Assembly (NCBI RefSeq): GCF_041956535.1 | Contig: NW_027192208.1 | Location: forward strand, 568,492-632,491 | Direction: 5' to 3' | DNA: 64,000 nucleotides | From: Calcarisporiella thermophila CBS 279.70 | Taxonomy: Eukaryota > Fungi > Calcarisporiellomycota | Shown here: one piece after another, positions 16,503-29,613 of the stretch | How the letters are laid out: each line of letters opens with the position of its first letter | Position numbering within the stretch: the stretch's first letter is position 1 | Position numbers and translations under genes: made by a program | Notes under the pieces: model-generated | Seen by the model: the letters and a program-made list of their open reading frames with translations, nothing else | Told to the model about the DNA's origin: nothing | Database searches by the model: none

Positions 16503-17271
16503 AGTAAATAGTATATACGAATGAACTAGATATGAAGGGAAATTTGGTAATGTAATAATTGATTCTTTTGAATATATTTTAGTTTTTCATGTAATATCGT
16601 CGTCATCTTTACTCTGATAGAGATGTGTTAAATTGCAGTCACGTATCAGTCACATTTTTCGACAAGCCTCCATTCTACACCGCGCTTCATCAGCTTGAGT
16701 TCGGTTGGTTTGCCTAGCTGCATTAAAAAATGAGCCAGATTTCTTCCTAGGCAAAATGATCCTGGAGGATTTCAAACCTCTTACCATAATATATAAACAA
16801 TAACGCGACGACAACTCGCAAATCTCTTTTCATTTTTCTCCTGAATAGGTTACCCCCAGTCCTCAAACTCTTATATGATGACGATATAGCACCTTAGCTA
16901 CGATGAATAGTTAATTTATTGTTAATTGTTTCTTACCTCATTCTCATGTCTACAAGCAACTTTTTTTTTTACGAAGAATGAGCCAAGAGTTGCAACCGTA
17001 TTCCTCGCCAAAGAGATCCCCTCTGTGCTGAGGAGCAAAACTCGTCAGGAGATAATTTGAAGCAATAAGAAAAGAGCTGAATTCGACTTGGTCGTGAAGG
17101 AATTTTCAATTTAATTCCCCCCAATCGGGTGACGTTTCAGAACCTAAATTTCTCCGGCGGGTTGAAATGAAAAATCTCCTCAAAGAAAATGCAAAGAAAA
17201 AAAAACGCACTCTGCTCTTTATTCCCTTTGCCATCGTTACTCCCTCTAATTTCACCACATTATACTACGTG

Positions 17272-18366
17272 ATGATCATGCGCAGATACCTCTTAATAGC
17301 TCTTTTTCTCTTGCTAATACAGAAATCCGCCGCCGTCAAAAACTTAGGGCAAGCGTGTGATCCCACCCCGATCTATAGCGCGGCCCTCCACTATATCGAC
17401 GACTGCGATAGCCCAATGCTAGCATGCGACCCGGGCAATCACACATGCGTCTACCGCGGATGCCGTAATACCGACTATATACCAGGCTGGATCCCGGGTG
17501 TGCCCTTTCCCATGCGATGCTCACCATCCACATCCTTCTGCCCCGATAACAACCTAAAGTGCCAGCCGCTGAAGCCCTACAACACTTCGTGTGAGCCGTC
17601 ACGGGACGACGAATGCTTTGGGACCCATTCCATCTGCCTGAACCAAGTGTGTCAACTAAAGATCCGGACCCTGGGGCAGCCTTGTGTCTTGGACGTGACC
17701 CAGTACCGGAGAACTGGATATGGCGGCGAGGCGGGCGTCGTGCAGACCATTGTGCGGGATGACTGTATGGCGGGCACCTTCTGCGCCGAAGACACCCGGG
17801 TGTGCGTGCAAGCATGGCCGTTGGGCAAAGAGTGCTCCCAGGACCGAGAATGCTTGACGGGGGCATGCGGCGAGTCGGGCCTGTGTGATGAGCCGCCAGA
17901 GACCTATCAACAAATAGGCAGCTGGGCCTATGTGCTGGTTGGCCTCGGGACCGCGGCCCTGATAGCCGCCACCATGGCCTGTCTCTGGATGCTGCACCGG
18001 CATTATCGGAAAATACGGGGCGCCAAGCGGGCGCGGTTCTTTTCAGAGCAAGAATCCTTCCGCCAAATCACTCTGCCGGGACTCGGGGAGGGGCATATCA
18101 CCCTTTCCACCCCGAATTCCCCGATGAGCGTCTCGTTTTCTGCCCGGAGTCGAAACAGCATCCTTACCGACGACGAGGACGATAGCACGCTGATCTCCTC
18201 CGTAAAGAGTCCCTCCATTATGAGCCGGTCTAGTAGCATGCACGGTGTGACCAATGGAAGTCTGCGCTCTATCTATGTACTCCCTGACGTCCAGATGGCA
18301 AACGAGGCCCAAAACTCGCGGCCGCCCAGCTCTTTTTGTCAAACGCCAAGGGAAAGCCTTTGGTGA
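17272..18366 (+). CDS. Intronless Cys-rich single-pass type I membrane protein of unknown function
   Basis: Signal-like MRRYLLIALFLLLIQKSAA; 20 Cys in the ectodomain; TM segment WAYVLVGLGTAALIAATMACLWML followed by basic HRHYRKIR; Ser-rich tail. Start is more likely 17272/17278 than 17167. Confidence 0.85.
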   Translation: MIMRRYLLIALFLLLIQKSAAVKNLGQACDPTPIYSAALHYIDDCDSPMLACDPGNHTCVYRGCRNTDYIPGWIPGVPFPMRCSPSTSFCPDNNLKCQPLKPYNTSCEPSRDDECFGTHSICLNQVCQLKIRTLGQPCVLDVTQYRRTGYGGEAGVVQTIVRDDCMAGTFCAEDTRVCVQAWPLGKECSQDRECLTGACGESGLCDEPPETYQQIGSWAYVLVGLGTAALIAATMACLWMLHRHYRKIRGAKRARFFSEQESFRQITLPGLGEGHITLSTPNSPMSVSFSARSRNSILTDDEDDSTLISSVKSPSIMSRSSSMHGVTNGSLRSIYVLPDVQMANEAQNSRPPSSFCQTPRESLW

Positions 18367-19885: not shown

Positions 19886-20104
19886 TCATGCCGCCACCGC
19901 TATAGCGCATGATGGCGTGTTTGGCCGCGTCGGAGCCGGGTACGGCCAAACGTAGTTGCATGGGGTATTTGGGCGTGACGGGGCGACAGGATACGGCCCA
20001 TTATAGCTTTTGGTGGGGAAGTGTGGACGTGTGGGCGCAATAGGATAAGGGGAGTGGCCACAGGGGGTATTAGGGCGGGAGGGTGCAATTGGAAAAGGGT
20101 TCAT
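19886..20104 (-). CDS. 72-aa Pro-rich repeat micropeptide (4 x P[YF]PxAPxRPNTP-like units), C-terminus CAIAVAA
   Basis: AAA-ATG context; repeats conserved at amino-acid level with synonymous codon differences; TATA-like box upstream; paralog at 29335-29613. Confidence 0.8.
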   Translation of the reverse strand: MNPFPIAPSRPNTPCGHSPYPIAPTRPHFPTKSYNGPYPVAPSRPNTPCNYVWPYPAPTRPNTPSCAIAVAA

Positions 20105-20306
20105 TTTACACAGAATGACTACTCAGAGATGCAATGGGGTGATGAGCAAGTTGATTGGGGCAACTGGAGGCGGCCTTAAGAACAAGTGAATAGAGGTGGG
20201 TGAGGGGAGAGAAGGTTTACTACGGAAGGCCTAACGAGAAATTTACAGATAAGAAAAAATTTTCAAGAATGAAAAATCAGTAAACAGGGGGGGGGGGGAA
20301 TACGGG

Positions 20307-20314
20307 CTTATATA
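20307..20314 (-). promoter_or_regulatory. Putative TATA box (TATATAAG) of the 19886-20104 micropeptide gene
   Basis: TATATAAG on the minus strand ~200 nt upstream of the ATG, followed by a C-run and a pyrimidine-rich leader. Confidence 0.5.
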
Positions 20315-20591
20315 TTGACAGAGAAGCCATGGTGCAATCTATTCATAAAAAGACAATTGAAAAAAAAATTTTTCCCCTCTCGCTGAATCTTATGCATGTT
20401 TACTAGAGTTCATTTCACATACAGGTTTGAGAGGAAAACAATTAAAAAAAAAGTTGACATTTGCATTAATAACTTTTTTGTGGAAGCTGGAAAAGTAAAA
20501 AATAGAAAAAGGGGAATCCGTACGCAGCAACGGTCGGCCCGAGAGGGAAAAAATGGCGAAAAAAAAAAACGAGTGCCGAGGCAAGACCTGC

Positions 20592-21451
20592 TTAATACTT
20601 GTATTTTGTAGAATAGTCCTTGGGGGACACCACCAAACCCCGGCCTAGTTACAAATCATGGAGATTGGCAAGGATTAGAAAATGCACCAGCACCTTTACG
20701 TGATCCATTCTTATGGTATACGTACCTTTGCGTGCTCCCCTATACACCGTCTCTACGATGTCGATAAACTCGTTCTAGATAGCGATAAAAATAGATCAGT
20801 CCCGCCCTTATCCTTTTTTCCTCCCTTGCTGCGTTTCCACTGAGGATCCATTACCTTATCCTCGAGGGCCCAGTTAATCTTATTGTTGTTTCCGGTTCCA
20901 AGGTCAATCATGATATGCTTGTTCCGATAGAAAAACATGACGGTGCAAGGGTCATACAATTCATACATCTTGTTGAAGTCTGGCACCTCCGTGATGTCGA
21001 CCTATGAAAAGAATGGATCCATGCTGAGGATTGGCCACCCATGAGCCCCCGATCTCAATAAAGGATCATTACCAAGTAAATCACGGCAAAGTTTTTGATT
21101 TTTTCAGCGGTCCCATAGAGAATCTCGTCCATCTTCATGCAGGTAGGATCCTGAAACAGCATAAAATGAAGTTATGAGTGAGATGTGCATGGTGAAAATG
21201 AATCTCTCCGATATATACCCAATCATGGCCGAAGCGTATGACCACAACCCGATCCTCCTCCGAAAGAATGGCTTGGTCTACTTGCCAACCTAAGGTGGGG
21301 GAATCAAAAGCTCAATCAGTAACTCGAAAATGATGTCTAGGATTTCCACCCGCCTTTGCAGGAGAAATGAAACTGAATGTGAAAACAGAGGAGAAAAAAG
21401 GAGGCAAACAGCACACTTACCGTTCTCAAGATGAGGGAGAAAATAGGACAT
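20592..21451 (-). CDS. DIB1: U5 snRNP thioredoxin-like protein Dib1/Dim1 (TXNL4A); multi-exon
   Basis: MSYFLPHLEN|GWQVDQAILSEEDRVVVIRFGHDW...PDFNKMYELYDPCTVMFFYRNKHIMIDLGTGNNNKINWA...GRGLVVSPKDYSTKYKY*. Confidence 0.97.
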
Positions 21452-21985
21452 GGTGTGGTTCTAGTGAAGCGATCGATATTTTTCCAAGATTAAATGCATT
21501 TAAAACCATTGCCGTCCATACATTCTATAACCTAACCTAATACAATTTTGGCATTTAACTTCCAGTCCTGGGGATTTCCAAGACAATATCCTTAATAGCT
21601 AGCAAAGTAAATAAGGAATCCAACAAAATGAATCAAAAACAGGCGCCCTCCTAGTTATTGAGAGCATTTCCATTACTTGTTGGAATCTCGAGGGTAATAG
21701 GTTTTTGATAGGGAAGAAAGGGAGTGATAGTAGTGGCATTCTGATGTCAGAGGAAAACTCCAAGAAGGATGTGCCATGCTCGGCAACGCGTCAGATGTCC
21801 GCTTATCGTGTCAGGAACTAACCACTCCTGATACAGACGTAATCCATTCTTTTCAACATGCTTACAGAACCTCCATATTGCACAGCATCTAAGGTTTAAG
21901 CGTGAATAATTTGCGGAGAGCGCAGCGAAAAAATATCAACCTTAGGAGCATGTTATACAGAGCTTCCATTTGGGATCAAATGCCT

Positions 21986-22750
21986 TTATTCGTTTTTTTC
22001 AAAAGGACGAACAGTATCTATCAGAGTCTGGGCAAACGCCTCAAACTCTGGATCCTCTCTGGCACGATCTAATCGTCTCTCTGCATCCTCCGCTGAGGTA
22101 ATTTCACTTATCAGTTGGCAAACACGGGGGTCTTTAAGATACTGCCGAACCTTATCCGAGTGTTCTAATAACAAGAAGTTCCATCTAGCTTAGATCCAAA
22201 TAAACATAGGTAATGATGGGGAGGTAGTACCAAGCTGAGCAAGTTGCTCGTCGCTAAGAAGCGATTCGTCATCTTCAGGGATATTGAGTGGAGGGGGATC
22301 CTGCTTCGGTGGTTCTGCGCATAGAGATGAGCTAAACACCCATGGCCATCTAAAGTAGCAAAAAGAATATATACCTGGAGGTGGGGCTGGTTTCTCACAC
22401 GGATTCTCTGCGTGGGCGGGGGAGAAGAGCCATTAAATAGTTGAATACAGTGAGAATTGACTCGAGTCTGTCACGAATTTTACCTTTATGCTTTTTATAA
22501 CAAGGGAGTGAACAGCTATTTAGATTAATGATATAGGTAAATTTCCTGAACATTATGCACATGGCTTCCATGAGGAAGAAAAAAGAAAGGGAGGGGGGAG
22601 GGAATAAAAGGACATTTACTATGGTAATGTGCATATAGGACATTTATATTTCGACACATTCTCTTGACACACTCCACATGCCTTGCTTTGTAAAGACTGA
22701 GAAGCAGAAAAGGATGACCCTTCTGACGATTTGCCCGCAAGCGCATTCAT
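21986..22750 (-). CDS. HIT-type zinc finger protein (Hit1/ZNHIT3-like, box C/D snoRNP assembly); multi-exon
   Basis: CGVCQENVSKYKCPICTLPY|CSLPCYKKHK; C-terminal helical domain ...LKDPRVCQLISEI...DPEFEAFAQTLID. Confidence 0.85.
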
Positions 22751-23464
22751 TACAGCATCGATGTTAGAGAGGGAGACGACGAATGAAGATCAGAGGTGAA
22801 TAGGACGAGGAACCACCTGCGCCGGTGGCAAACAAACAAAAATAACAATACGGTGGCTTTGCTTTGCGCGGCAGCAGGTCTGCAATCTTTCTTAAACTTT
22901 GGAGTTGGATACTGCGGCCCGCTGAACATCCATTAGCGTTTTCGATCCGCAGCGGCCTTTTTAAGCAGGAATCAGGATTGGATCAAGCAATAAGAAACGG
23001 TCAGGAAATGGTTTCGAGGCTGGCCGAGGGGGCCGTGACGGAAGAGGGCGGGACGTCATTGCTTGCGTGGGCAGGCCATAGGACGCTGAGCGCAATTGCC
23101 TCCTGCTCGATTAAGGAGGAGTTGGCTCGGGAAGGAGCGACAAGGTAGCCGAAGAGGTGGGCTTGAGACCCTGGCTGCTATATTAAATAAATGAATTAGA
23201 TGAAGGGAGCGGGCAACTCCGAAAGGAGGCGTGTCACCTCTCCCTCAGAAGGGAGGCGAGCGTGGGGGGTCCCGTGGGTGCCTCATCTGTGACGTTGGCG
23301 GTGGCCTGCGGGCAAATCTTAAGGCCGCCCTTCCTCCGGGATTGCAATATGAAGAAGCCGACTCCGCACGGGTTGCGACCACGGAGAGATTAGGAAGACG
23401 AAATCAAGGTTGGCAGTGACTTTGTGCGCTCATTGGTGCGGGTTTCGGAGTAGGCCCATCTCCG

Positions 23465-23472
23465 TATATAAG
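23465..23472 (+). promoter_or_regulatory. Putative TATA box of the Sfp1-like gene
   Basis: TATATAAG ~165 nt upstream of ATG 23633, after a GC-rich promoter region. Confidence 0.5.
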
Positions 23473-23632
23473 ACCTATAGAAACGCGGCCCTAGGTTTTA
23501 TATTACACCGACCGCCGCTTCCCTCTCGTGCTCTTCTTTACCCCAGCTATACCTCCTCTCGGTGCGAGCCTTCCTTCTCTCCCATACCTCGCGTAGTCAT
23601 TCCAGCCCCAACCCAAAAGCATCTTCCCCATC

Positions 23633-24539
23633 ATGCCTTCCGCCGTGTCTGTCTTGCGTCGCTGCAGTCTTGTGTATGCCTTTGAGTAAGTAGGAAAGCA
23701 TCGAGCGGCCCCAAGCCGATGGCATCCTTACCATTTCTCCTTGTTCCTCTTTGTAAAGCACTCTTTCCCCGCTCAATTTCGAGGAGCACTCCGTGCCCGC
23801 CGACTCCTTCAATCCCCACGACCTGGAGGCTGCCTTCTTCCAGGACTCCTTCTGGTGCTGCGGAAAGCCGCTCTCCGACCTCCATGACCTCCTCCTGCAT
23901 CACGAAGACTACCATGCGCACGAGTTCGAGCTCGACTTTACCGAGGACGAGCCGGGCCAGGATTTAAAGCGCAAGCGGTCTCTCTTCGAGCAGCAGTTCT
24001 CCTTCGCCGCCAAACGCCTTGCCTTGGCGGACAAGGACGAGGCGGCCGAGATCGAGGAGAAGGTACACCCCGAGGGGGACGAGGGCGACGACCGCCAAAT
24101 CCCATGGGAGCTGGCGGTAATGGCGAGCCAGCTGGTGGCTTCCCTAAGAGAGGCCCCGCTTTCGGAAGTGGAGGAGGCTTTGTTTCAGCGGGAAGAGCTT
24201 GGCGACGACGCCGACCGCCCCTTCAAATGTCCGGTGCCCGGCTGCGATAAAGCCTACAAGAACCACAACGGGCTGAAGTATCACCACCAGCGCGGTAACT
24301 GCAACTTGAATGCATCGGGGATGGAGGACGTGAACCGCCCCTATCGGTGCAGCGTCAGCCAGTGCGGCAAAAGATACAAGGTAGGTTGCGGACGAAGAGG
24401 ACGATCAAGCCTGGGCACTCGCTGACTCTCCTTGTGTTGCTGCTTACAGAACTTGAACGGGCTCAAATACCACATTGAAAAATGCCATCTCCAATCCGTT
24501 CCTGTGCTCCGCCCGACTCAGGCCATGACCCTGAACTAA
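23633..24539 (+). CDS. SFP1: Sfp1-like C2H2 zinc-finger transcription factor; 3 exons (introns 23686-23758 and 24381-24449)
   Basis: FWCCGKPLSDLHDLLLHHEDYH; RPFKCPVPGCDKAYKNHNGLKYHHQRGNC; RPYRCSVSQCGKRYK|NLNGLKYH. The GT-AG introns restore the reading frame. Confidence 0.85.
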
Positions 24540-25242
24540 TGCATTATTTCACACCCACTCACCCCCTCAACCCCCCTATCTATATACACTTAACAACACA
24601 AGCAATCCATCCAGCATTTCAATCTGTATTCCACCCCATAATCACACTTCTTTATTTCTAATTCGGTTGGGAAGCCAAAATCGGTAGAGTGTTCTTGATG
24701 TAATTGTAGTTTCCCCTCCCAAAAATCCAAAACTCAATAAATAGACGTTGAGCAGGGAGCTTGGCCCTTAATAAAAGTAAATTCGAGTAGACAATAACCC
24801 TTTCTTGGCCAGCTTCGCTACAAAAAGTCATAGCTTCTGGGAGATGGAGTGGGTGGAAGGCAGCTCGTTTCATCTAGCTTAAGTCGAAAACTCTCGCATC
24901 GAACTCTACGTGTATTCTTAGGGGGAAAAGGTATCGGCCGACAACTTTCTAGGCAAGAGTTAAGCCTCCATGAACTAGGAAGGGTAACAGAGAAAAATAG
25001 ATCTTATTGCCTTCCTGAGTACGCCGCCATAGCAATATACGATTTCGGGAGTTGGAAAGCCCACCAAGTATCAAGCCGAGTGGCACTTCAAAAACGATAG
25101 TGGCCCCCCATTGAGATTCACCTCTTCTATCCGGGGTCGAGTAGTGGGTGGCTGAGTTTCCTCGAATCTGCTCCCTCTCAGTACAAAGCACATGATATTG
25201 AATCCACTTTTACTAGTTCCCTCCAGCGACCAATATTGAGCG

Positions 25243-27265
25243 ATGCTTGCATCCATCAACCATGTTTTTCGGCGATATCGCCGGACTCTCGGTTACGCAG
25301 CCGGCATTGTTGGCGGCGCGTACCTGATTGCACAATACGCCAAGTCGAAGCTGGTCGAACACCAAGAACGGTTGGCGACGGAGCGGACCGCCAAAGAAAA
25401 GTAAGTCTTGCATCATTCGAGATCCGCAGTGGCCCATTCCCCTAGCCGTGGGTACGGATGGATCATGGGATTGAATTCTTCTTCCACTAGTTTGCGGAGG
25501 CGATTTGAGCAGAACCAGAGCGATTGCATGTTTACGGTCATGTCACTGCTTCCCTCGCTAGGAGAGCAGCTATTGAGCGAGCTAGATGTCGAAAGAATCA
25601 CAGCGAGGTTGCAGCAAGGTCGTGCCCCGAAACCTGCGCCAGAGCCGGAGGCCGTGAAGGAGAATGGCGCGCGAGGGATGGAGGAAGAGGTGGCATCCAA
25701 GAATGCAGAGGTTAAAGATGAAGAGACAAAACCACTGAATGGAGATCCAACCACCGATGATGCGAAAATCAGTCCCGCAGAAACCAATACTACCGAATCA
25801 ACCGATCCTCATAAAACTGCACCAGAAGTGCCCCAGGCACCTAGTGAAAAGGAGAACGGGGACTCAAAAGGCGAGGAGAGATTAGTAGAGGAACACGCTC
25901 GGAGCGAGAGTGAAAAAGTTACGGAAAGATTACAAAACGAGCCGGATGGGGAGTTGAAGGGCAAAGAGAAAGAGAAGGAGTCTGCCGATGCATCTAATGG
26001 CACGCAGACCAATGAACAAACCACAGTGGTCCCTAAGGAGGGTCTAGACAAACAAACAAAAGCACAGTTATTACAAGACTTGAAGATCTTGAGTGAGTTG
26101 CACATTTCTTTGTTTTTTTCTCCTTCTTGCTAGAGATCGATTTTCGACTTGCATATTATCCACTTGTTTCCTAACATCGTGTTCATGGTAGCCTTCACTC
26201 GCACGATATCCTCGCTATATCTCCTCACCCTCCTCACTCTTCTCACCCATGTGCAACTTAATCTGCTCGGTCGCTTCACCTACATCTCCTCGGTCTTTGC
26301 CATGCAAGAAAACGAGGCCACCGGCGAGACGTCGCTGCGAATGCAGGAGCAATCCGGCCTCGGCGCGGATGTGGAGCGGCGATACCTGGCCTTTAGTTGG
26401 TGGATCTTGCACGTGGGCTGGCAACAGTGCGTGGAGCGGGTGCGGGCCGCCGTCGAAAAAGTGTTTGGGGCCGTCCCCTTGAAGCGCAAGCTTACCTACG
26501 GAGAAATCGTGAGAATGGTGGAGGACGTGCGGGAGGAGGTGGAGGGCGAGCTAAGGAAACCGGATGGATTTGTACACCCGCTTGGAGAAAGATTAGCGAC
26601 CCATGGCGGCAGTAGCCAGAGCCATCCTCTCGTCAAGTAAGTCCTCCCGCTAAACTTGGCTTTCCCGCCCAGGACCCACCACTACACTCGTCTAACCATC
26701 CCCGCCTTTTTTTTTCCCTCGTAGTATGCAAAACATTCTCCTCCCCGTGACCACGGACGAGGAGCTACGCACCCTTCGAGAGGGCCTGGGCGAGATCTTC
26801 CCCGCCATCCATGCTGAGTTGCGTCGCCTCCTGGACGAGACCCACGACTTTGTCGAGAGCCGGGACTTTGCGACCGTGCTTCGGCTGTGTCTCGATCAAG
26901 TGTTTGCCCACTTTTTCCACACCGCCTTTGCAAAAACCTACTTCCCGTTGGAGCTGCCGACCGCTCCCCAAGAGGAGAAGGGACCCCGGATCCAGGAGGT
27001 GGGAGAGGACGAGGAGGCCTCGGTTCCGCTGCTCAAACTCCTCCCGGTCGTGGCGAAACAGGCACATCTTGTGATCCACGGGGTGCCAAATGAGTATGTG
27101 GAGGTAAGCAGGATTTGAACAGAAGCCATCTCAACGCTGAAGTCTCACGGGATTTCTCTTTTCATTCTTATCAATGCCAACCCATCGCGCTGCACCACGT
27201 AGACATTAAGTAATGTCAAGGCGTTGCAAGGGTTTTCCGCCATCGTCTATGCTTCCTTTGATTGA
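25243..27265 (+). CDS. PEX3: Peroxisomal membrane biogenesis factor Pex3; multi-exon
   Basis: N-terminal basic stretch + TM (RRYRRTLGYAAGIVGGAYLI); KEN|LRRRFEQNQSDC; FTRTISSLY..LLTLLTHVQLNLLGRFTY; YLAFSWWILHVGW; ends FSAIVYASFD*. Confidence 0.95.
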
Positions 27266-27624
27266 TGAAAGAAAATATATGCCTTTTTTTTGGTTTTACT
27301 CTAATACTCCTTAGCAATAATGCCTCTTTGCTTTGTTACTACTGACTTTTAACTTTTTCTTCCTCTTTCCTTTGAACGAATATAGACCTCTGCCGTCGTG
27401 TTTATTGCTAACTGTAAACGAACGAAAAGAAAGCGACACGATGAAAAAAAAAAGAGTGTTATCGAATACAGAACTGAAAGAATTACATCTATACAGGCTT
27501 GGCCAGCTCTAAAATATATAGTATATGCATATCCGGGAGAATTATCATAGAGAGAGGAAGAGAAAACGCATTAAAATTACAAGTGTATGGCACAATAGGA
27601 GTACATTCGCCGAGCTTCACATCG

Positions 27625-28144
27625 TCATGCCTCCTCTTCCTCCTCCGATTCCTCCCAGTCGTTTTCCTTTACAATTCTTTCGCGTTCCAGAACAAACTTT
27701 CCGATTTTGTATCGCTGCGAATCCTCATAAGCATAGATATATTTCCATCCCACCGTAGTCTGGCACACATCGCAAAACACATCGGCGACCGTGTGCAATC
27801 CAGTGATGAGAAGACGATCCTCCACCTGGCCCGTGGACACGTTGACTACCTTTGAGAAGAGGTAGGCACGGCCAAGCCGTCCGTGAAATGCCTGGAGGGG
27901 GAGGGGGGTGCGGTCAGCAGAGAGCGAAGGGAGGGGGAGGGGGAGGGGGCGGATGAATGAGGGGAACTTACTTTAGAGATGAGCGAGTCATGATCGGAGA
28001 GATGGGTATGGCATGTGCTGCAAGTATATACGCGGTCGTTGAGGTAGGTTGGAAAGACTAAGTAAAAGCATCCAGAAAAAAAAAGACATCATAATTAGGC
28101 CCATTGGCAGCAATTCACAGGTCATGGCACGCACCTTTGCCCAT
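27625..28144 (-). CDS. MOH1: Yippee/Mis18-family zinc-binding protein (Moh1/YPEL); 3 exons
   Basis: MGK|VFPTYLNDRVYTCSTCHTHL...ISK|AFHGRLGRAYLF...LITGLHTVADVFCDVCQTTVGWKYIYAYEDSQRYKIGKFVLE. Confidence 0.92.
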
Positions 28145-28967
28145 CTAGGTATATGCTTGAATCTAATTCTAGAGTTGTATATCGATTATGAATCAATGCC
28201 AAAGTGCGGAATGAGGGGAGAAGGAGTGCGGAGGGGGATGCAGAAGAGGATGGAAGAGGAATCAGGATCCAAAATTTAATTTGACATGACAAGTCACGTC
28301 GAGTGACAGGCCGTCTGCAAGGCTGAAATGAGCAGGGAGATCGGACGAGGGGGTTGCTGGCTCTGATTAGCTGGCGGGCCGAGTGGGGTTGGGACTCTGA
28401 GCCGGCCTCCCCCGGCCACGGCTTTCTCCTCAGCAAATCGCTCGCCGCCCTGCCAATGCATACCGCTTTGGCAGGGCAAAGGCGGCTGGGTGGACGTGTT
28501 GCCACCGCGACCGCTTGCTCACAAAGCGTGGCCAAGAGAATTGGAGCAGAGCAGCCCAGCGCGATCTGAAAACAACAAACCGCAAAGCAGCGGGAGGGGG
28601 TTGGGCCGGCCGGGCCTCCGCCCTGGGCAAACCGGCTTGGCTCTCGCAGGCAGAGCGGCCAAAACACTCCGCCGCGCGGGTCGAGGAAGGAGGGCAGGCT
28701 GGCATCCGATCCGGCGGATCAAAACGAGCAAGCCGAATCAGACACTATTTTAGTGCTAAGCTCAGCCTAAGGACCCCCCCGCGGAGTGCGCCCAAAAATA
28801 CACACCACGTTTTTTCTTGATTCCTTGTTCCGCGATGGATTCGAAAACGGGGAGATCGCTTTATTGCGCGGCGCTCTCCTCCTCGGTTGCCGGCCCTGGG
28901 CAGGGGAGGGCCCTGCTCGATCCGTGCCCGCCGCGCCCTGGCGCGAGCTGGGCGGATCCGCCGGAAC

Positions 28968-29332
28968 TATAAAAAAAGCCGCATGGTGCTGACTGTTGAC
29001 GACACAAAATTCAAACGGCTCGAATACGCGTCAATCCCAACCATTACTTATTTTGAAAGGAAAAAAAAATTTTTGTTTGTTTGTCAATACGCGGAGTCGA
29101 ACGGTTTTTTTTTTATTGTGTCAATATCCGCTGTAAGGCAGTCAGCCGTTTTCGCTCTTCCTCTCTCTTCTTTTCTATATTTATCGCCTTGGCCTGGAAA
29201 CCCGAACGAGGCAGCATTATTAATAGCCCATTGCCCATCTCGCCCCCCCCCATTCAAGTAAGCCGTTGACATTGCTCTCGGAGCCTGTCACCTGTTTCTA
29301 ACAACCGCCGAATTTCCGCACCATCCAGCCAG
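28968..29332 (+). promoter_or_regulatory. Putative TATA box and 5'-UTR intron of the 29335 micropeptide gene
   Basis: TATAAAAA at 28968; GTAAGC donor at 29258, CTAAC branch point at 29298, CAG acceptor at 29326/29330 just before GCC-ATG. Confidence 0.6.
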
Positions 29333-29334
29333 CC

Positions 29335-29613
29335 ATGTCAGTCTTCGCCGCTTCCCCTGTGCTCTGCGTTCCTAGCTCGCCATCCGTCTACTCCGCGCAC
29401 ACCGGCTGCCAGAGATCCAGCATCCCCGATTCCGATGCTCGCTCACAGCTCACCCTGTCATCCAAGCGCCTCGGCTTCTCATATCACGACCCTTACCCGG
29501 TGCCTCCCGCGCGGCCCAACACCCCCGCCAAGAGGCTTGCCTGCAACCCTTATCCCACCGCCCCCACTCGGCCCAATACCCCCGTTAGCTATGTGTGCGC
29601 GGTGGCTGCTTAA
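29335..29613 (+). CDS. 92-aa Pro-rich repeat micropeptide (2 x PYPx[AP]PxRPNTP units, each preceded by KRL), C-terminus CAVAA
   Basis: GCC-ATG context, C-ending codon bias, canonical 5'-UTR intron; motif and C-terminus shared with 19886-20104. Confidence 0.82.
   Translation: MSVFAASPVLCVPSSPSVYSAHTGCQRSSIPDSDARSQLTLSSKRLGFSYHDPYPVPPARPNTPAKRLACNPYPTAPTRPNTPVSYVCAVAA

Follow-up and report, generated by a model that had tools for sequence, protein, structure and literature searches.

A 64,000-nucleotide stretch of the Calcarisporiella thermophila CBS 279.70 genome (contig NW_027192208.1, positions 568,492 to 632,491; hereafter the window) holds two small open reading frames (ORFs), ORF1 and ORF2, which carry between them six copies of a proline-rich unit resembling P[YF]Px[AP]PxRPNTP, and this raises the question of what such proteins do in a thermophilic, saprobic fungus of the Mucoromycota, whose position is that of a sister to the remaining Mucoromycotina (10.1101/2022.06.24.497490). 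A preliminary description of the window had offered two answers, precursors of peptides that are made on ribosomes and modified after translation (RiPPs) or microproteins that bind SH3 domains under the control of proline-directed kinases. Our analysis shows that the two ORFs belong to a real, old and undescribed family of five microprotein genes, whose products are probably intracellular, motif-based regulators rather than RiPP precursors.

All six units lay where the preliminary description had placed them, with the codons and spacers it gave, and the strict pattern, found six times in the window, did not occur in any of 100 shuffled versions of it. Searching the 28-Mb genome by protein, pattern and profile recovered three more genes, bringing the family to five genes with 11 units and bearing out the proposal of an undescribed small-protein family; against a prokaryotic background (46 strict matches in 596 Gb of prokaryote DNA), 0.002 strict matches are expected in this genome by chance. 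The unit is 12 residues long, and all 11 copies share the invariant core P-x-R-P-[NH]-[TSF]-P, whose [TSF] position is called the acceptor below. In the apparent ancestral layout, a unit A is joined through a short linker of basic character (T-P-x-K or S-P-x-x-R) to a unit B, which is followed by a Cys/aromatic tail of the form [CVT][SNC][YG]V[CW]. The family members and their parts are as follows.

19886..20104, minus strand: ORF1, 72 amino acids, four units; absent from public protein sets
20063..20098, minus strand: ORF1 unit 1 (PFP..PSRPNTP, then Cys)
20015..20050, minus strand: ORF1 unit 2, A-type (then x-K), with the acceptor Thr replaced by Phe (RPHFP)
19961..19996, minus strand: ORF1 unit 3, B-type (then CNYVW)
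19913..19945, minus strand: ORF1 unit 4, shorter by one residue and hence lacking PxxPxR
20307..20314, minus strand: TATA box TATATAAG, 210 nucleotides 5' of ORF1, with no ATG between
29335..29613, plus strand: ORF2, 92 amino acids, two units and a 52-residue Ser/Pro-rich N-terminal extension; an annotated singleton (P0001)
29491..29526, plus strand: ORF2 unit A (then AKRL; its TPAK is also a full CDK consensus)
29548..29583, plus strand: ORF2 unit B (then VSYVCAVAA and the stop)
29176..29184, plus strand: imperfect TATA-like element TATATTTAT, 159 nucleotides 5' of ORF2
C14:344 kb: the C14 copy, 67 amino acids, two units
C1:970 kb: the C1 copy, 73 amino acids, two units
C13:185 kb: the C13 copy, 51 amino acids, one unit

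Units 2 and 3 of ORF1 fit the A-B pair, with an extra unit on either side, and the C13 copy retains unit A only. Past the last unit, the sequence shows partial conservation between blocks, reading [CV][SN]YV[CW] in three genes, and every B unit, as well as three of the four ORF1 units, is followed by a Cys within 1-5 residues. The AVAA-stop ending noticed earlier indeed closes both ORF1 and ORF2, but as a family trait it fails, being present in two of the five genes. All five are single-exon genes encoding basic proteins (net charge +5 to +7) of 51-92 amino acids with 16-28% proline; no Pfam domain was found in the family ORFs that were scanned, and the ESM Atlas model of ORF2 has a predicted local distance difference test score of 0.24. 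As a side observation, the VSYVC of the ORF2 tail (window:29584-29601) resembles the VSYIC of the GSK3 activation loop, a post hoc likeness that is probably due to chance. Possible introns in the 3' parts of the C13 copy (L058:4575-4635, GT...AG, about 59 nucleotides) and the C14 copy (L056:4630-4720, GTATGT donor) would, if real, alter the C-termini of these two proteins.

ORF1 starts at the first ATG after its TATA box, and in four of the five genes a canonical TATA lies 77-210 nucleotides upstream with the ORF start as the first or main ATG; the TATA-like boxes previously assigned to both window ORFs hold for ORF1 (at -210), whereas ORF2 has only its imperfect element at -159. The combination of canonical TATA and matching ATG was found in none of 14 other ORFs with proline motifs, although this control is biased, and a search for a promoter motif common to the family genes found none. 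Coding on the antisense strand was rejected by stops in all antisense frames, and an exon or upstream ORF of a neighbouring gene by the ORFs' own TATA and first ATG and by the difference of the downstream genes; the C14 copy is not part of its neighbour either, to which it is convergent in orientation. Annotation had nevertheless overlooked four of the five genes: ORF2 is the only one with an NCBI/UniRef protein, and ORF1 is missing from a collection of 15 billion proteins. Three further pattern matches in the genome equalled the control count in number and were rejected as members, C22:402841 being an off-frame reading of the last exon of a GSK3 gene, C26:358399 falling within a mitochondrial ribosomal protein gene, in an exon and most likely off-frame, and C12:442819 having no ATG and stops just upstream. 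A single match coding for PWPPARPNTP (G000:C22:437179-437207, plus strand), 35 kb from a GSK3 paralog, is a possible sixth, diverged member.

The strongest result concerns the age of the family and the selection on its unit. At the third positions of the four invariant Pro, Arg, Pro and Pro codons, 156 of 220 comparisons among the 11 units differ (71%, against a random ceiling of 75%), and four-fold sites are saturated, at 0.61-0.75 for paralogous neighbours and at 0.5-1.0 per pair for the family itself, while DNA alignment between family loci is almost confined to the units. The claim of protein-level selection rather than a DNA repeat was thus confirmed, since silent sites are near saturation while the unit is retained, and the saturated third positions reject a DNA repeat. 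Two non-member genes of the window served as synteny markers.

17167..18366, plus strand: Cys-rich membrane-protein gene; the C13 copy has a paralog of it (62-67% identity) at a distance of about 4 kb
27628..28061, minus strand: Yippee gene; a paralog (61% identity) directly adjoins the C14 copy

The first of these markers lies near ORF1 and the second near ORF2. In addition, the C1 and C13 copies each have, about 2.7 kb upstream, a paralog of one small zinc-finger gene, and the C1 copy itself is about 0.9 kb upstream of a kinase gene of the GSK3 type, another GSK3 paralog being 23 kb from the C14 copy; the GSK3-type identity of these kinases is one that we assume from their activation-loop sequence. 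Paralogous neighbours in this way connect all four blocks that hold the five genes, with rough, post hoc chance values for the linkages of 1e-5 to 5e-4, over the approximately 9.5 kb across which the duplicated blocks were compared. Because silent sites are saturated, neighbours are paralogous and the unit is nevertheless retained, we conclude that the genes were copied long ago along with their blocks and that selection at the protein level has preserved the unit, which does not by itself prove present-day expression. The best explanation is that an ancestral two-unit gene was copied together with its neighbourhood by old segmental or whole-genome duplications, that ORF1 was later expanded to four units and that the C13 copy lost unit B.

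Other genes in these blocks tell of the genome at large. Five GSK3-type paralogs (C1:972 kb, C14:367 kb, C22:402 kb, C26:59 kb and C26:160 kb) show 73-77% identity to the C1 copy of the kinase, and the shared blocks also hold three close paralogs of Yippee and four of the zinc-finger gene. The shared GSK3, Yippee and zinc-finger blocks are a sign of an old large-scale duplication in C. thermophila, which the publications consulted do not mention for this species. Two small orphan proteins (L058:1421-1822, minus strand, P0004; and L057:1269-1631, minus strand) carry an N-terminal zinc-finger-like CPYC...HIKxxH motif and a Pro/Gln-rich tail; proteins of this kind have four paralogs in the genome and no homologs among 5.8 billion proteins.

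Relatives outside this genome were sought widely. Word-based homolog searches with ORF1 and with the repeat region of ORF2 gave nothing, a profile search of 1.84 billion representatives returned ORF2 itself and two unrelated tandem-repeat artefacts, and ESM Atlas, PDB sequences, Pfam and NCBIfam contained no family relatives. Metagenome, viral and prokaryote contigs yielded isolated single matches, mostly in a context that looks off-frame and none in a family-like ORF; a full-text literature search for the motif found nothing, and the zinc-finger neighbour, used as a route to syntenic loci in other fungi, had no homolog in the database. These collections consist of annotated proteins or of mostly prokaryotic DNA, and since annotation lacks four of the five genes in C. 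thermophila itself, the searches do not show absence from other fungi. The family is so far known from one genome and is undescribed.

The composition of the unit suggests what the proteins may do. RPx[ST]P is present in 10 of the 11 units, and Ser or Thr occupies the position four residues before the acceptor (-4) in nine, both features coinciding in eight; the acceptor is Thr in nine units, Ser in one and Phe in one, and Ser and Thr interchange at both the acceptor and -4, which appears as the nonsynonymous swap typical of phosphosites. The class II SH3 motif PxxPxR overlaps 10 of the 11 units, being regained through a register shift in the shortened A units of the C1 and C13 copies, and in the two-unit arrangement A and B are 16-23 residues apart. 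The kinase GSK3 phosphorylates residues four positions before a primed site. RPx[ST]P is the consensus of DYRK1A, DYRKs typically prime GSK3 (PMC10952393), and PxxPxR is bound by the yeast SH3 domains of Rvs167, Ysc84 and Yfr024c (PMC314469). A comparable element exists in dynamin-1, where 830-PQVPSRPNR-838 forms an SH3 site within a tail that DYRK1A, CDK5 and GSK3 phosphorylate and regulate (PMC11329700).

The earlier idea of an SH3 ligand with a proline-directed phosphosite remains the best available reading, and it could be sharpened to a predicted DYRK-type RPx[ST]P site with Ser/Thr at -4. We therefore put forward, tentatively and with less than even confidence, that the family comprises basic, disordered cytosolic microproteins whose unit is a phosphorylation-switched docking site, an SH3 ligand combined with a DYRK/GSK3 site. 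Each unit would be a short linear motif in polyproline-II conformation that docks on SH3 domains via PxxPxR, and two units 16-23 residues apart would engage SH3 proteins that are tandem or dimeric. A kinase of the DYRK/Yak1 type would phosphorylate the Thr or Ser of RPN[TS]P, the phosphorylated residue would prime GSK3 for the Ser or Thr four residues upstream, within the SH3 ligand, and the sequential action of the two kinases would turn SH3 binding off. The proteins might in this way act as phospho-switched adaptors or as competitive decoys, and lipidation of the Cys that follows unit B may hold them at membranes. The family is like the dynamin-1 tail in its PxxP[ST]RPN run, its predicted disorder and its plausible phospho-control by the same group of kinases; unlike it, the family consists of stand-alone proteins of 50-90 amino acids with one to four units and has Thr-Pro at the position of R838, so that the likeness is one of motif and does not imply homology. 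Likewise, the DYRK-primed GSK3 sites of eIF2B-epsilon, tau and NFAT (PMC10952393) share an RPx[ST]P acceptor preceded by Ser/Thr at -4 but lie in large proteins, whereas those of the family are predicted sites in microproteins.

Several observations weigh against this docking-switch reading. Neither the DYRK nor the SH3 consensus requires the near-invariant Asn (10 of 11 units) or the P-[YFH]-P start of the unit, and an unknown dedicated partner may therefore set the constraint. In all units Thr, Ser or Phe stands where dynamin has R838, the second Arg of PxRPxR, which is essential for amphiphysin and endophilin binding (PMC11329700), and since the equivalent residue is Thr, the units are not ligands of the amphiphysin type. 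Short Pro/Arg motifs also fit such consensuses easily, and it would be unusual for a core signalling regulator to lack homologs in other fungi, where none was found, though annotation often passes over small ORFs. The first of these points leads to a different, rather unlikely explanation, in which the unit is a ligand or pseudosubstrate of one dedicated partner, such as the active site of a kinase or peptidase or a proline-binding domain other than SH3, and its SH3 and DYRK/GSK3 matches are incidental. The core P-x-R-P-[NH]-x-P, with an Asn that known consensuses do not need, and ORF1 unit 2, whose non-phosphorylatable Phe at the acceptor looks pseudosubstrate-like, speak for such a partner, but the exchange of Ser and Thr at two positions four residues apart is the behaviour of phosphosites, and no candidate partner was found.

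The other explanations make the ORFs precursors of processed peptides, or deny them a function. It is unlikely, though this is the main competing reading, that they encode lipopeptide precursors resembling a-factor or rhodotorucine, from which the unit and the following Cys would be excised and lipidated, to leave the cell without a signal peptide and be perceived by an STE3-type receptor. The ORFs are short and lack a signal peptide, as the preliminary description had stated for ORF1 and ORF2 and as we likewise judged from hydropathy and sequence only; several unlinked copies carry a near-identical unit, as in yeast pheromones (10.1101/2021.09.28.462209), the Cys residues after the units are suitably placed, and the CAVAA terminus of ORF2 is a C(x)3X end. 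The precursors of rhodotorucine A, with tandem units and CAAX-like spacers between them, and of the h-type pheromones (HPP1) are similarly small proteins without signal peptide that have tandem near-identical units, Cys after units and several copies (PMC3068285), but unlike them none of the five ORFs has a terminal CaaX, the feature most tightly kept by pheromone selection (10.1101/2021.09.28.462209). Moreover, A units have no adjacent Cys, the spacers GHS, NYV and SYV are poor as aaX, and the tails of the C13, C14 and C1 copies either continue for 8 to 28 residues after their nearest or last cluster of Cys or have an ending that does not resemble CaaX. It also counts against lipopeptides that the Mucorales mate through trisporoids, and we know of no rhodotorucine or h-type pheromone from Mucoromycota. 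Still a little less likely is the specific proposal of a processed rhodotorucine-like lipopeptide that is matured without a terminal CaaX and is the ligand of an STE3 receptor. Mimicry of plant hormones, suggested by a likeness to IDA and CEP, was rejected as there is no secretion signal.

The RiPP proposal now appears improbable. Cytosolic multi-core precursors of the MSDIN/POPB type, from which a prolyl oligopeptidase (POP) excises and cyclises Pro-flanked spacers, would agree with the spacers of 4-12 residues between invariant prolines, with the lack of a signal peptide, as in MSDIN precursors (PMC6514808), and with the Cys, Tyr or Trp in several spacers. What is retained, however, is the Pro-rich unit itself, and the segment after it is partly conserved and not hypervariable, so the layout of constant repeats around variable cores did not stand up, and this reading is weakened because the unit and not the spacer is conserved. 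In addition, the four to five prolines of the constant part would make POP cleavage ambiguous, the A-B linkers are basic and variable in length whereas the tail after B is partly conserved, and the C13 copy, having one unit, has no flanked core. Dikaritins need a signal peptide and DUF3328, and MSDIN peptides need a leader, a follower and POPB (PMC12048977, PMC6514808). ORF1 begins with a unit, the N-terminal hydropathy of four genes is 0.2-1.2, and the hydrophobic N-terminal stretch of ORF2 (2.0 over 8 residues) is broken by Pro; a KR precedes each unit in ORF2 only, with ORF1 and the C1 copy lacking any dibasic site; no MSDIN leader or follower was found in the five sequences, and the ORFs, of 51-92 amino acids and free of Pfam domains where scanned, do not show the fused N-methyltransferase domain of borosins. 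Consistent with the earlier report of no tailoring enzyme, none was present in the window or at up to about 4.5 kb from the three remaining copies, all copies lying among housekeeping genes with no POP, DUF3328 or methyltransferase nearby; POPB macrocyclase was absent near the five genes in a POP search that covered the neighbourhoods, and a genome search for UstYa (PF11807), run without a positive control, gave no matches. The family thus resembles MSDIN (amatoxin) and dikaritin/Kex2 repeat precursors (PMC6514808, PMC12048977) in its short repeat ORFs with Pro-flanked variable segments, but differs from them in lacking their leader, signal peptide, regular dibasic sites and nearby enzymes and in that selection keeps the constant part. 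That the ORFs are non-functional now, or are chance or low-complexity features, is very improbable: no homolog was found elsewhere, four are unannotated and the C13 copy appears truncated, yet the unit has been retained across four paralogous blocks despite saturated silent sites, the frames are open with a start codon and TATA, the chance expectation for the motif is the low one given above, and the off-frame look-alikes on C12, C22 and C26 were removed.

The neighbours of the two ORFs are ordinary fungal genes, among them Fes1, Dim1, a C2H2 zinc-finger gene, Pex3, Yippee and an F-box/WD40 gene. A gene for an M13 (neprilysin-like) peptidase, a peptide-processing type of enzyme, lies 8.6 kb 3' of ORF2 (window:38216-40295, plus strand), and Ess1/Pin1, a WW and rotamase protein that binds phospho-Thr-Pro, is encoded 15 kb from ORF2 (window:44316-44798, minus strand), a proximity probably due to chance. 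Two adjoining ORFs at window:45513-47854 (minus strand) have weak matches to DUF4436, a family known mainly from bacteria, and are possible products of horizontal transfer, and an AT-rich island at window:13854-15328 (minus strand) holds two ORFs without a Pfam match.

In summary, these genes are a clear example of microproteins missed by annotation, in four of five genes, while synteny and the saturation of silent sites reveal the age of the family and the selection on it. Should the docking-switch reading be true, the family would represent a minimal module standing on its own, a single 12-residue unit being both an SH3 ligand and a DYRK-then-GSK3 switch. If they were instead lipopeptide precursors, they would provide an early-diverging fungus with a peptide ligand for STE3, and a lipopeptide matured without a terminal CaaX would be a peptide pheromone or autocrine signal in the sister lineage of Mucoromycotina, a group thought to rely on trisporoids as mating signals.

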